Positions 41,475-55,444 are shown, counted from the stretch's first letter. The stretch is 64,000 nt of DNA from Salpingoeca rosetta (GCA_033442325.1 JAWQFM010000033.1:531669-595668); one strand, 5' to 3'. Notes: generated by a model from the sequence alone, not told the origin. Translations and numbers: made by a program.

Positions 41475-41669
41475 ATGATGGCTGACAACAGCAAGGGCAA
41501 ACAGGTGGCGGTGGGCGATGATCTTGGTAGTGGCGGTGGTGACGGTGATGATATGGCTGCCCTTGTGCAAGCAACAAAGCCCGAGCTGCCACAGCTACCA
41601 CGGAGTTTGCTCATGGCAACATGCGCTGCCGGCACGGAGCGTGCCGTCATCCACGAACTCATGACCAAG
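41475..41669 (+). pseudogene. Isolated first exon whose 3' end resembles the start of the Spt5 NGN domain; possible 5' exon of a chimeric gene
   Basis: MMADNSKGK...PQLPRSLLMATCAAGTERAVIHELMTK|GT resembles, from recall, Spt5 NGN ([22 protein letters not shown]). No further Spt5 exons follow. Confidence 0.4.
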
Positions 41670-42070
41670 GTGTGTGTGTTCGTATGTGTGCATAGGTGCA
41701 TGTGTGCGTGTGCGTGCGTGTATGTATGTGCTTGCATGAGTGCATGTGTGTGTGTGTGCATGTGTGTGCATGTGCATGCACACGTGCTTGTGTAGTAATG
41801 TCGGTCTCGTCCACCCCGTACAATAGCAGCCGATGCCTGAACTGGCACACACATACACACACACTCACACACACACACACACACGCACGCACGCACACAC
41901 ACACACACACACACACACACACATACACACACACACACACACACACACACACACACACACACACGCACGCACACACACACACACACACACACACACACAC
42001 ACACACACACACACACACACACACACACACACACACACACACACACACACACACGAACACATGCGTGCAG

Positions 42071-42678
42071 CAAGGCTGACGGGCAGCTGACGACTGCCGA
42101 GCGCTTTGCAACAGCCATGACCGCGGGCGGGTGCGGTGGCATAGCCGCACGACCTCGACTTTTCTGTGCAGCAGACCATCTTGGAGCCTGAGGTGGCACT
42201 CAAGCGGTTCGCTTTCATCGGCAACGCCCTTGTTCGCATCATCAGGGAGGAAGGCATTGGCAAGTTGTACTCTGGGCTCGGGCCCAACGTGATTCGCGCC
42301 ATGCTCATGACGGCGGGGCAGCTCGCCTCATATGACACGTTCAAGCAGCTGCTGCTGACAACAACTGGCGGCCTGTTCAAGGACAACCTCGTCACCCACT
42401 TCACGGCGTCGACGCTTGCCGGTGGCGTTGCCACGCTGCTGACACAGCCGGTCGACGTGGTGAAGACGCGCGTGATGGCAGCGACCCCGGGCACATACAG
42501 CAGCGCGCTGCAGTGTGCGGGCATGACGCTCAAGCAGGAAGGACCGCTCGCCTTCTTCAGGGGGATGGTGCCTGCGTTTACGCGTCTGGGCCCACAAACG
42601 ATCCTCACGTTTGTGTTTCTGGAGCAGTTGCGGCGATTGCACTACTACCTCACGCATGGTGATGACAAGCCCGTCTGA
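42071..42678 (+). pseudogene. Mitochondrial dicarboxylate carrier (SLC25A10/DIC-like) 3' fragment, copy 1, with an internal replacement
   Basis: Near-identical to 54826-55444, with carrier motifs EGIGKLYSG, GQLASYD, PVDVVKTRVM and GPLAFF. Bases 42143-42217 replace the segment encoding GTPMDVCNVRMQ...NYKH. Confidence 0.85.
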
Positions 42679-42775
42679 TGGAGGCAAGGGGGGGGGCGTG
42701 GTTGATTGGCGTGGTGATGTGTGTGTGTGTGTGTTTGTGCATGTGTGTGTGTGTGTCGTGCGCGTCGTTGCTTGT

Positions 42776-43131
42776 NNNNNNNNNNNNNNNNNNNNNNNNN
42801 NNNNNNNNNNNNNNNNNNNNNNNNNNNNNNNNNNNNNNNNNNNNNNNNNNNNNNNNNNNNNNNNNNNNNNNNNNNNNNNNNNNNNNNNNNNNNNNNNNNN
42901 NNNNNNNNNNNNNNNNNNNNNNNNNNNNNNNNNNNNNNNNNNNNNNNNNNNNNNNNNNNNNNNNNNNNNNNNNNNNNNNNNNNNNNNNNNNNNNNNNNNN
43001 NNNNNNNNNNNNNNNNNNNNNNNNNNNNNNNNNNNNNNNNNNNNNNNNNNNNNNNNNNNNNNNNNNNNNNNNNNNNNNNNNNNNNNNNNNNNNNNNNNNN
43101 NNNNNNNNNNNNNNNNNNNNNNNNNNNNNNN
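42776..43131. other. Assembly gap (N run)
   Basis: N characters. Confidence 1.
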
Positions 43132-44463
43132 ACACACACACCGAGACACTTGGTTTCTATTGATCTTTTTGGTTTCTGTCTATCAACGCTTGAGGCCCTT
43201 GGGCCGCTCACATAGCATTCAAGCACTCAGTAGCAGACATTCACTCCCTCACCCAGTCATGTCACCCACTCGTGCAAGCGCCTGTCTGAAATGAGCACAC
43301 TTTCGGTTTTGATTGCTTCCCTCATCTCTGAGCACTGGGAATGATGTAAGATTTCAACAAATTTTCCCCAATGACGAGAAGTTGCAAAAGATTCGAGGGT
43401 GATTTAATGATCCCGCCGCGATTCAATTTCGCTGTTCACCAGTACCACCAACACGAGCCAACCAACCAACCGCACGAAGACTACGAAGGATGGCAAGCAC
43501 GAGAGGCAGCTTCGATTCGGCGTCAGGCGGGCTGTGGCGCATCGACGAAGAGGTTGTTGTATGCAGAGCTGTCGTGTGTCTCTCAGTCTCTGCCTCTCTT
43601 TCATTTTCTATCCCCTTCCGTCTCTCAGTCTCAGTCTCTCTTTCGCTTTCTGTTTCTCTGTCTCTGTCGTGCTCTTTCTGTTTTGCTCTATCTTGCTCTC
43701 TTGCTTATGCGATCGTCCCTTGGAGTGATTGAGCACACACTTGTGTCTTGTGTCGTCTGTGCCCGTGTGTCGACCCTGACGTTGGTTGTTGTTGTCGATT
43801 CCCGCCTTCCTCGTTTTCTTTCCACACCGTCTGTGTTACTGTGTTTCCCACTCTTTGCATCCTGTACGGAAGAACAGAGAGAGCATGTGTGTGTGTGTGT
43901 GTTGATGCGTGTATGTGTATGTGCATATCTCTCTGTGGTGCATCTTCACTTCACACACAACCTTAGTGTGGCTCACGTTCCTGTTTACCTGTGCCTTTGT
44001 GCCCGCCTTTGTCTTGGCCTAGTCCTGTTCTGACACCAAGTCGGGCAGCATGAGCTCTGAGACATTCAACGCAGTACGTACAAAGGAATGCGACCATGCT
44101 GCTGTGTTGCACGTTCACTTGGCCACAGCACACACACACACACACACACTCCCCTGCCCATTGCATCTCACTCAAACACAACACAACATGTTCCTTGCTT
44201 TCTGCCTGCTCTGTGCGTGTCGTGCCTTGAATCGTGTGCTGTTGCACATAAGCAGGCCTCAAGGGTAAGCGGAAACAGCAGGTGTTCATGGTCTGTCGAG
44301 TACAAGCTGGATTGCATGATACACGTGTTCGTCCTGCCAGCAGAAGCAGACCAGCATCACGATCGTCGCCACCACAGCGCAACCACCATCACAGCGCCGT
44401 TATCATTGCTGCGCCGCTACACAGCTGCTTGTGTGTGTGTGTGTGTGTGTGTGTGTGTGTTTG

Positions 44464-53320: not shown

Positions 53321-53348
53321 GTACGCCAATGCCTCGTGCACTCGTGGC

Positions 53349-53474
53349 TTAAGTTGTTGTTGTTGTTGTTGTTGTTTAAGTTGTTGTTTAAGTTGTTGTT
53401 GTTGTTTAAGTTGTTGTTTAAGTTGTTGTTGTTGTTTAAGTTGTTGTTTAAGTTGTTGTTGTTGTAGTTGTTGT
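53349..53474. repeat. (TTAAG(TTG)n) compound repeat at the point where the sulfatase is truncated
   Basis: Directly visible. Confidence 0.9.
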
Positions 53475-53663
53475 GTGCGACGATGACTGTTGTGCGTTCA
53501 TGCGCACATTCGCCACCACAACCAGCAACACCGCCGCTTAGCACGACGCAAATACACTGCGCTTATTCGATCGCTCTGCATTCACACTCACTCACTCACA
53601 CACACGCTTATTGCCTGCCTGTCTGTCTCTGCCTGTCTCTCTCGTACACGCACGTGCTTGCAG

Positions 53664-53749
53664 GCACACAGCGGGGGCAACTGCTGCTGACGATCAACGG
53701 CGTGGAGAAGGACCGTGACTTTTACTTTGGAAAACTCAGACAGCTCGAG
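53664..53749 (+). pseudogene. Isolated exon of an EB1/RP-EB family microtubule end-binding protein (EBH C-terminal domain)
   Basis: AG|…QLLLTINGVEKDRDFYFGKLRQLE|GT matches the EB1 signature LxLTVxxLEKERDFYFGKLRxIE. No CH-domain exons nearby. Confidence 0.8.
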
Positions 53750-54178
53750 GTGAACGCGATACGCGAAGCCGTGGACAGAACCATAGCTCATCACACACGC
53801 ACTTACGCATGCACGCTCCCCCACACACTCTCTGCCTGTCTCTGTCGATGCCTCTCTTGTCCCCCTCTTTCCCCTCCCTCTTCCTTTGCCTCTCTGCATC
53901 TCTGTCCCTCCGTCCCCTCAGCTTCCCTCCCTCCCTCTCTCTCACACACACTCACACACACACACACTCTCTCTCTCTCTCTCTCTCTCTTTCTCTCACT
54001 CACTCACACACACACACTCTCTCTTTCTCTCTCACTCTCACTCCCACACACACTCACACACACACACTCAGACACACACACACACACTCACACACACACG
54101 CTCTCACTCCCTCACTCTCTCTCGCCGTCTCTTGTCCGTATCTCATCAACGGTTGCGTGTTTGTGCCGGCCTGAGCAG

Positions 54179-55444
54179 CGCCTGGGACGGCGCCGCGCGG
54201 ACTCGTGCAGACGGCAGTGGCTCTTGTTCGCAATGAAGGGTTCCGCGCACTCTACCGTGGCCTCACCGCCTCTCTGGGCAGGCAGGGCACATACTCCACC
54301 ACGCGCTTTGCAGGTGTGGCATCCAAATGCGCCCATCTGTGCGTGTACACATGTGTGCATGTGTTTGCGCTTGCATGTGTTTCTGTGTGTTCATGTGTGC
54401 ATCCGTGTGCGTGTGTGCATGTGTGTGTGTGCGTATTTCTGTGTGCATGTGTGCCTGTGCGTGCGTGTGTGTGTTTTTCTCGACAAGAGCGTGTGTTTGC
54501 GTGTGTTGCAGCGTGACTTGCGCACCTGTTCTATCAACTGTCCTTCACAGCAGGACACCAACCATTCAACACCCCCTTTCCCCTGATAGCCTGCTGCTCT
54601 GTCTCTGTGGTGCCTGTCTGCGTCCATACTCGTGGCTCACCGACCGCCATTCCTGTACCCTCTCTCCGCGCTCTTCCCCAACTCTACACACGCACACACA
54701 CACACACACACACACACACACACACATACACACACACACACACACACACACACACACACACACACACACACACACACACACACACACACAGTGTACGACT
54801 TTCTCAAGGCTGAATTCAGTGCCCGCAAGGCTGACGGGCAGCTGACGACTGCCGAGCGCTTTGCAACAGCCATGACCGCGGGCGGGTGCGGTGGCATTGT
54901 GGGCACACCCATGGACGTGTGCAACGTGCGCATGCAGGATGATGGCCGGCTGCCGGCTGCCGAGCGCCGCAACTACAAGCACGTCGGCAACGCCCTTGTT
55001 CGCATCATCAGGGAGGAAGGCATTGGCAAGTTGTACTCTGGGCTCGGGCCCAACGTGATTCGCGCCATGCTCATGACGGCGGGGCAGCTCGCCTCATATG
55101 ACACGTTCAAGCAGCTGCTGCTGACAACAACTGGCGGCCTGTTCAAGGACAACCTCGTCACCCACTTCACGGCGTCGACGCTTGCCGGTGGCGTTGCCAC
55201 GCTGCTGACACAGCCGGTCGACGTGGTGAAGACGCGCGTGATGGCAGCGACCCCGGGCACATACAGCAGCGCACTGCAGTGTGCGGGCATGACGCTCAAG
55301 CAGGAAGGACCGCTCGCCTTCTTCAAGGGGACGGTGCCTGCGTTTACGCGTCTGGGCCCACAAACGATCCTCACGTTTGTGTTTCTGGAGCAGTTGCGGC
55401 GATTGCACTACTACCTCACGCATGGTGAGGACAAGCCCGTCTGA
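54179..55444 (+). pseudogene. Mitochondrial dicarboxylate carrier (SLC25A10/DIC-like), copy 2, two exons, lacking the first transmembrane helix exon(s)
   Basis: Exon 54179-54313 encodes GLVQTAVALVRNEGFRALYRGLTASLGRQGTYSTTRFA. Exon 54792-55444 encodes VYD...GTPMDVCNVRMQDDGRLPAAERRNYKH...GQLASYD...PVDVVKTR. The first Px[DE]xxK motif and ATG exon were not found upstream. Confidence 0.85.

Follow-up and report, generated by a model that had tools for sequence, protein, structure and literature searches.

The 64,000-nt stretch of Salpingoeca rosetta DNA analysed here (the window) lies on scaffold GL832987.1 (assembly GCA_000188695.1; 739,932 bp), where record coordinates equal window coordinates plus 527,064. 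Positions given below, including those called unit positions, are window coordinates unless a scaffold or a locus is named. Between 41475 and 55444 (~568.5-582.5 kb of the scaffold), incomplete pieces of a dicarboxylate carrier, a GNS-type sulfatase and an EB1 gene accompany an orphan nuclease-like/kinase-like gene, which is named RK here. The initial annotation had read this string of fragments as a mosaic of the kind left by Helitron or Pack-MULE capture, or as a subtelomeric patchwork. Our analysis gives a different picture. The stretch is probably the first unit and the first junction of a segmental-duplication cluster around RK, rather than the outcome of transposon-mediated capture. The broken housekeeping genes represent pieces of the neighbours of RK, the carrier upstream and the sulfatase-EB1 pair downstream, cut by the breakpoints of the duplications. 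The breakpoints through these passenger genes are mostly intronic and several of them lie in or beside CA/TG microsatellites. The evidence consists of the layout of the cluster, the linkage of the parental genes, the deletion and duplication joints between the fragments, the lack of transposon hallmarks and the patchwork of similarity between copies. Literature searches returned no description of the locus or of segmental duplications in S. rosetta.

Layout of the cluster and linkage of the parental genes

Self-comparison of the window revealed a unit with a period of 12,756 bp, in which 42071-50832 is repeated at 54827-63803. Unit 1 spans 42071-54826. Copy 2 of the unit follows at 54827-64000, also on the + strand, with RK copy 2 at 57204-62458 and sulfatase exon 1 at 63350-63448. 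The copies are 91-94% identical when insertions and deletions are counted, and differ by 0.5-7% in substitutions alone, in line with the >1 kb and roughly ≥90% identity that define such a cluster. The duplication cluster occupies ~569-643 kb of the 740-kb scaffold and holds three direct copies (1, 2 and 3) and two inverted ones (4 and 6). The order along the scaffold is copy 1, copy 2, a ~10.9-kb run of N that begins at the window end, copy 3, a complete sulfatase gene, a complete EB1 gene, inverted copy 4, a further run of N (>8 kb) and inverted copy 6.

Seven annotated RK paralogues were found in S. rosetta with full-length RK as the query: five on GL832987.1, one on GL832965.1 (~1.311-1.317 Mb) and one on GL832984.1 (~277-287 kb). 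An eighth, partial copy of the RK unit is present on the unplaced scaffold GL833047.1. The dispersed copies differ in extent. On GL832965.1 the RK gene only is present (unit positions 57197-62538). The GL832984.1 copy begins at unit position 52230, midway in the sulfatase fragment, and takes in the EB1 remnant, a low-complexity filler, the carrier and the region upstream of RK (region X) before ending in the RK 3′ flank. The RK core is thus common to all seven annotated copies, and the flanks differ. The ~12.8-kb unit had been proposed to be a mobile or amplifying element that picks up host DNA. Amplification is borne out, with at least five copies in the cluster, copies on two other scaffolds and one on an unplaced scaffold; capture of the Helitron or Pack-MULE type is not, the neighbours of RK being the source of the fragments. 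A subtelomeric position likewise found no sign in the assembly, in which the cluster lies at least 96 kb from the scaffold end (the assembly is at scaffold level).

The fragments had been attributed to unlinked genes. Their parents are, instead, linked to them. The complete sulfatase P0121 (513 aa; Sulfatase and SGSH_C domains) stands directly after copy 3, and the complete EB1 gene (287 aa; CH and EB1 domains) adjoins it. The first exons of the carrier, which encode the N-terminal helix and the signature absent from the window, are located beside copy 6, the right-most RK copy, in a unique gene context. Among the loci compared they occur only there (locus L008, in which 5651-5731 corresponds to residues 4-30 of the full-length carrier). 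In window-equivalent coordinates the parental sulfatase lies at ~82-89 kb, EB1 at ~89-91 kb and carrier exon 1 at ~116 kb. The sulfatase and EB1 parents are 28-37 kb, and the carrier first exons ~61 kb, downstream of the fragments. Genes truncated at the junctions have their parents at the edges of the duplicated region. Of the intact parental loci that had been expected to exist, GNS and EB1 are complete on the same scaffold, and the carrier is represented by its first exons, its last exon falling within an N gap. All assembled dicarboxylate-carrier copies are incomplete, because the sole copy with first exons runs into this assembly gap. The tandem repetition of the unit and the linkage of the parental genes had both been overlooked in the earlier reading.

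Two further observations were made at the sulfatase loci. The parental sulfatase contains a ~311-bp tandem duplication (96.5% identical; L003:10658-11278, window-equivalent ~83.0-83.6 kb), by which exon 2 (63 codons, in frame) is present twice; the annotated model uses one of the two. The RK copy on GL832984.1 (L007:17015-24141) adjoins sulfotransferase genes and a 515-aa sulfatase that is not close to P0121. These surroundings may be a coincidence or may reflect a sulfation gene neighbourhood.

Passenger fragments and their joints

The carrier, sulfatase and EB1 fragments are all on the + strand, keep the parental splice sites and are truncated at the points given below. The initial annotation had described them as co-oriented, intron-retaining and incomplete, and this description proved accurate. 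Three runs of N are present in the window (42776-43131, 44464-45086 and 49192-49291). None of them lies inside a passenger fragment, and no gap causes a truncation.

In copy 1 the carrier is reduced to a fragment of its last exon (42071-42678, +), of which 42145-42675 matches Mito_carr with an E value of 1e-33, in agreement with the carrier 3′ part noted before. The copy begins within this exon, immediately after a 215-bp (CA)n tract, and a 75-nt patch (~42145-42215) replaces the carrier signature motif; the patch has no match among all loci compared. In copy 2 the 5′-truncated carrier (54105-55444, +) consists of a remnant of a parental intron, an exon at 54179-54314, an intron and the last exon at 54793-55444. 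Matches to Mito_carr at 54175-54327 and 54791-55441 (E values 2.5e-7 and 1e-43) bear out the carrier reported at ~54179-55444. The first ~45 residues are absent: tblastn with the carrier N-termini of two relatives gave no match anywhere in the window. What had been listed as a carrier 3′ part and a 5′-truncated carrier is one feature of the unit, seen in copies 1 and 2. GL833047.1 (L002:1-290) holds one more truncated copy of the carrier. Homology to the unit starts there in the CA-rich filler, at ~54040, and the preceding 290 bp are lower in GC, unique, and match neither the window nor the other loci compared, which marks a separate junction.

The GNS-type sulfatase fragment (50313-53320, +) comprises exons 1-9. 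With the complete P0121 as the tblastn query, nine exons were aligned in 50409-53321, corresponding to residues 28-292 of the 513-aa parent; residues 293-513 gave no match in this search. The 57% of P0121 covered is close to the 5′ two-thirds that had been claimed. Two of the exons match the Pfam Sulfatase profile at positions 42-185 of 301. Relative to the parent, 9 of 801 exon nucleotides and 3.3% of intron bases are changed, and the exons contain no stop or frameshift. One of its introns holds a 141-bp (ATGTATGT)-type repeat (51970-52110), which reads as MYVC repeats in open reading frames (ORFs). The EB1 fragment (53632-53814, +) carries a single EBH exon, placed at 53672-53749 by the parental acceptor and flanked on either side by part of the adjoining intron. 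The score of the exon, 29.5 bits, exceeds the Pfam EB1 cutoff of 27, as expected from its earlier assignment. The fragment is 89.6% identical to parental EB1, and 5 of the 78 exon nucleotides are changed, three of the changes being non-synonymous.

The joint between the sulfatase and EB1 fragments lies in 53321-53631 (+), which holds the remnant of sulfatase intron 9 and a deletion junction at ~53574-53631. Window positions 53076-53573 align to L003:13026-13677 (sulfatase intron 9), and 53632-53814 align to L003:18566-18746 (EB1). Since the parent carries ~4.9 kb between the two aligned segments, comprising the sulfatase 3′ exons and the EB1 5′ exons, the two fragments are joined here, intron to intron, by a 4.9-kb deletion in the adjacent parental pair. 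The second joint is a duplication joint. After the EB1 fragment, ~290 bp of CT/CA-rich low-complexity filler (53815-54104, +) is found, which is present in neither the parental EB1 nor the parental carrier locus, is present in the GL832984.1 copy and is found in part on GL833047.1. From 54105, which is 74 bp before the exon at 54179, identity to the parental carrier locus is 97.5%, and this match starts within a parental intron. The last EB1 intron is thus joined to a carrier intron at 54105. Because the EB1-filler-carrier joint recurs in the second, diverged copy on GL832984.1, it is real and not a local mis-join.

This recurrence bears on the possibility that the cluster is an assembly artefact, made of false joins at microsatellites or of divergent haplotypes laid in tandem. 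Such an artefact would fit a 2011 draft in which three copies (1, 3 and 4) have N gaps at one unit position, copy 2 is followed by a gap of ~10.9 kb, and the left boundary of copy 1 lies at the 215-bp (CA)n. The stretch from 49292 to 64000, however, is free of N and spans the 3′ end of RK copy 1, the sulfatase-EB1-carrier mosaic and RK copy 2, so the junctions of the mosaic lie in contiguous sequence. Moreover, substitutions set the copies apart by 0.5-7%, and each copy encodes a protein of its own (796-908 aa). About two-thirds of the words sampled from 50300-55500 occur in sequencing runs of nine studies, a result that speaks for the presence of the sequence and not for its continuity. With these points and the joint shared with another scaffold, an artefact is very improbable.

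The sizes of the gaps in copy 1 were estimated against the gap-free copy 2 as ~327 nt, ~120 nt and 60 nt; by copy 3 the second would be ~380 nt. Gap 1 (42776-43131) is in non-coding sequence just 3′ of the carrier stop, and its flanks align to copy 2 at 55534 and 55862. Copies 1, 3 and 4 all break at this unit position (L003:1-2532 and L004:1-8195 for copies 3 and 4), so something in the sequence 3′ of the carrier stop (copy 2 55534-55862) is hard to assemble. Gap 2 (44464-45086) is upstream of RK copy 1, within region X. Gap 3 (49192-49291, 100 N) falls in the last RK exon of copy 1 and corresponds to 60 nt in copies 2 and 4. Should copy 1 resemble these two, the 60 nt with 1 and 2 flanking bases would make up 21 codons and the frame would be kept.

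The joints also have consequences for the gene models. When the parental splice sites are applied, the last codon of sulfatase exon 9 is left with two of its three bases, the EB1 exon is bounded by whole codons at both ends, and the carrier exon needs one base from the preceding exon. The three exons are mutually out of frame because these splice phases mismatch, and each combination meets a stop within 7-20 codons. By length arithmetic, the annotated 559-aa Sulfatase plus Mito_carr model fits exons 1-9 and the two carrier exons only with a 1-nt shift. A similar model was found at the left edge of the cluster. The exon at 41478-41669 (+) is unique and is the first exon of the 241-aa model P0006, whose sequence begins with it and continues, across an in-frame splice, with the carrier 3′ fragment. 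This exon had been described as Spt5-NGN-like. The assignment was rejected: no Spt5-NGN match was obtained in Pfam at E values up to 0.1 and no Spt5 match in PDB. A phmmer search of PDB at E values up to 10 returned designed repeat proteins only, a weak negative for so short an exon. The exon has no homologue in any other locus compared.

Taken at face value, the 241-aa model and the 559-aa and 401-aa sulfatase-carrier models would be functional chimeric genes made by exon shuffling. Fused models are predicted at two independent copies, and the fragment exons have no stops or frameshifts. Among the truncated copies the last exon of the carrier is 98.8-99.1% identical, with changes too few to judge constraint, compared with a divergence of ~3% in non-coding DNA. 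Between 20% and 58% of the words of 53600-54330 occur in runs guessed to be RNA, a result that bears on presence and not on continuity or splicing. This explanation is nevertheless improbable. Spliced at the parental sites, the exons do not share a reading frame, and the encoded proteins would be incomplete, the sulfatase being without its C-terminal 43% and the carrier without its first helix and, in copy 1, also without its signature motif. The synonymous to non-synonymous counts (5:3 and 2-4:4-5) are too small for an estimate of constraint, and the conservation of the exons is equally explained by gene conversion from the intact parents. At least three annotated S. rosetta genes are probably annotation chimeras: the "dicarboxylate carrier" of 241 aa and the two sulfatase-carrier models of 559 aa and 401 aa.

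Similarity between copies, transposon hallmarks and the shared right end

How far the copies have diverged depends on the part of the unit. Within the RK body (45973-48071 compared with L003:5675-7770 and with 58908-61069), copies 1 and 3 differ by 0.48% and copies 1 and 2 by 6.7%; copy 2, which lies between copies 1 and 3, is ~6.5% from both. The likeness of copies 1 and 3 in RK suggests that gene conversion was recent or that one duplication passed over the unit between them. For region X the distances are 1.6% between copies 2 and 3 and 3.7% between copies 1 and 3. The direct copies are nearly identical to one another in the RK 3′ flank, where copy 4 is 6.4% different. Since the distances change along the unit, the pattern fits gene conversion or unequal exchange within the array. 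The sulfatase fragment, compared with the EB1 exon, suggests that long homologous tracts have been homogenised and short ones have not. The locus thus shows apparent ongoing gene conversion, as judged from these distances. Between RK copies 1 and 2 one exon passed the filter (3.9% compared with 5.7% elsewhere; 5 synonymous and 12 non-synonymous changes), and these counts are too thin to use.

RK copy 1 corresponds to P0152 (857 aa; 45442-49536, +), with a coiled coil, a PD-(D/E)xK-like motif and a kinase-like C-terminus. Copies 2 (P0149), 3, 4 and 6 encode 866, 837, 878 and 796 aa, respectively. Region X (43132-45441, +) precedes the gene and may contain an alternative first RK exon at ~44050; the RK model of copy 2 starts at the equivalent position, 57204. 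The RK 3′ flank (49537-50291, +) follows it. The kinase-like part gives weak APH/Pkinase catalytic-loop matches. A PD-(D/E)xK nuclease has an alpha-beta-beta-beta-alpha-beta core that bears the D...(D/E)xK catalytic residues. The middle domain of RK has no Pfam match. It carries a motif-like D...FELK near ~48020. Of the six paralogues aligned over this domain, two (copies 1 and 6) keep the putative catalytic Lys, as does a metagenome relative, and the other four (copies 2 and 4 and the two dispersed ones) have Thr in its place. The AlphaFold model of the nuclease-like domain (mean predicted local distance difference test (pLDDT) score 41.5; 7-sequence alignment) has an order of helices and strands compatible with PD-(D/E)xK and is too poor for a fold search. 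Among 1.84 billion clustered proteins the nuclease-like exon has two representatives, one from S. rosetta and one metagenome protein. On its 1761-bp contig, this relative has a 163-aa nuclease-like ORF (43% identity) followed by a 291-aa kinase-like ORF (34%), the same domain order as in RK. RK is apparently a lineage-restricted orphan gene family, found outside S. rosetta only on this one metagenome contig.

Helitrons start with 5′-TC and end in 3′-CTRR, with a hairpin 10-12 nt before the 3′ end, and Pack-MULEs have long terminal inverted repeats (TIRs) and target-site duplications (TSDs) of 9-10 bp. A string of co-oriented, intron-containing fragments within a repeated unit is what both kinds of capture would leave, and in this the locus resembles them. 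The hallmarks themselves are lacking. No transposase, Rep/Hel or reverse transcriptase (RT) domain was detected by Pfam in 60 ORFs from both strands of the full unit. The scan returned Mito_carr, EB1, Sulfatase and a coiled-coil artefact only, although a non-autonomous Helitron would need no Rep/helicase ORF. No TIRs were found, the inverted repeats in 40.5-56.5 kb being all (CA)n against (TG)n, and the ends of the two dispersed copies have neither TIRs nor TSDs, with 8-13-bp chance matches only. The 5′ ends of the copies all differ and none starts with TC. At the shared right end no 3′ hairpin was detected, the folding being no better than that of shuffled sequence (z = 0.59). The earlier remark that no transposase, Rep/Hel ORF or terminal repeats could be seen therefore holds over the ORF and inverted-repeat scans. 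Helitron capture was rejected on the lack of a Rep/helicase ORF, a constant 5′-TC end and a 3′ hairpin with CTRR, and Pack-MULE capture on the lack of long TIRs and a 9-10-bp TSD. Unlike the products of such capture, the unit has variable 5′ ends and parental genes adjacent to it. A retrocopy or copying mediated by a long interspersed nuclear element was also rejected, with introns retained in all copies, no RT domain and no A-run at the shared right end. S. rosetta carries one Helitron family and one MULE-like family (PMC6875170), and the unit is without the signatures of either.

Several findings weigh against the segmental-duplication reading. One is the right end at ~50285-50295, where homology to copy 4 and to the GL832984.1 copy fades and which is common to the direct copies, inverted copy 4 and the GL832984.1 copy. 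It is followed by the sulfatase start in the direct copies, by the EB1 3′ flank in copy 4 and by a sulfotransferase gene on GL832984.1. This end counts against random duplication, because random breakpoints should not coincide. RK-bearing segments have also reached two other scaffolds. The left boundary of copy 1 (41670-42070, +) is a TG/CA-rich, intron-like stretch with the ~215-bp (CA)n at 41840-42055, after which homology to copy 2 begins (42071 = 54827); the join crosses this tract and is without independent support. Large N gaps conceal parts of copies 2, 3, 4 and 6 and the last exon of the parental carrier. Finally, CA/TG tracts lie in or beside ~6 of 10 breakpoints, compared with 14.5% of window positions within 15 bp of such a tract, but this link is suggestive only, as alignments tend to end at repeats and thereby bias the count. 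Three of the 10 breakpoints have no repeat. The stronger statement that all breakpoints are at microsatellites was weakened by copy 4, whose apparent boundary at a (CA)25 is internal, the homology running ~60-90 bp further.

The shared right end keeps a mobile-unit explanation alive at low probability. The RK segment would then be a discrete, unconventional mobile or self-copying DNA unit with a fixed 3′ end at ~50291 and variable 5′ ends. One-ended or rolling-circle-like copying would drag pieces of upstream genes along and may depend on the nuclease-like protein of the unit itself. Its right end is shared in three unrelated surroundings with different left ends, its copies are spread over three placed scaffolds and one unplaced scaffold, RK is intact in seven of seven annotated copies with every passenger truncated, and the genome does harbour Helitron and MULE-like families. 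These features are offset by the lack of any Rep/Hel, transposase or RT domain, and of TIRs, TSDs, a 5′-TC start or a 3′ hairpin. In addition, the GL832965.1 copy does not reach the shared end but stops ~700 bp before it, every passenger piece derives from the immediate neighbours of RK, the nuclease fold is unconfirmed and the putative catalytic Lys is not conserved. A mobile unit of this kind is therefore unlikely. The more specific proposal, in which RK and its flanks form an undescribed self-amplifying unit that is copied at the DNA level from one end and may depend on its own nuclease-like/kinase-like protein, seems quite improbable.

For the segmental-duplication cluster, a sequence of events can be outlined from the joints. 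A tandem duplication would first have joined the last EB1 intron to the carrier intron. The 4.9-kb deletion would then have removed the 3′ part of the sulfatase and the 5′ part of EB1. The order of these two steps is inferred. Tandem, inverted and dispersed copying would have followed, with gene conversion between the copies. Replication template switching, end joining or unequal recombination may have been the mechanism; such duplications and their general mechanisms have been reviewed (PMC8254307). The fragments would be non-functional by-products, with selection or a copying bias acting on RK.

Comparison with known duplication systems

The fragments of the RK cluster have a counterpart in the chimeras created by tandem duplication in Drosophila yakuba (PMC5460883). 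In both, co-oriented 5′ and 3′ gene parts stand head to tail with introns intact, and the breakpoint products are read by gene predictors as fusions. Unlike in D. yakuba, an internal deletion and re-duplication have stacked three parental genes into one joint here. The apparent gene capture is, in this corrected reading, the breakpoint debris of a duplication-prone locus.

The cluster as a whole resembles the core duplicons of primates, such as LCR16a/NPIP and GOLGA (PMC6920530; bioRxiv 10.1101/2025.07.09.663898). There, as here, a lineage-restricted core gene is present in every copy, the flanks made of neighbouring genes vary, repeats lie at the boundaries, and similarity between copies is a patchwork. 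The spread is also alike, being mostly within one region, in direct and inverted orientation, with few dispersed copies. The differences lie in the host, a choanoflagellate, in the size of the units (~5-13 kb, compared with tens to hundreds of kb) and in the boundaries, which are at CA/TG microsatellites here and at Alu elements in primates. The core of the primate duplicons is under positive selection; the likeness of RK to it is one of architecture only. As a segmental-duplication cluster, the locus shows in a choanoflagellate, on a small scale, the core-duplicon architecture known from primates, with an orphan gene family as its core.

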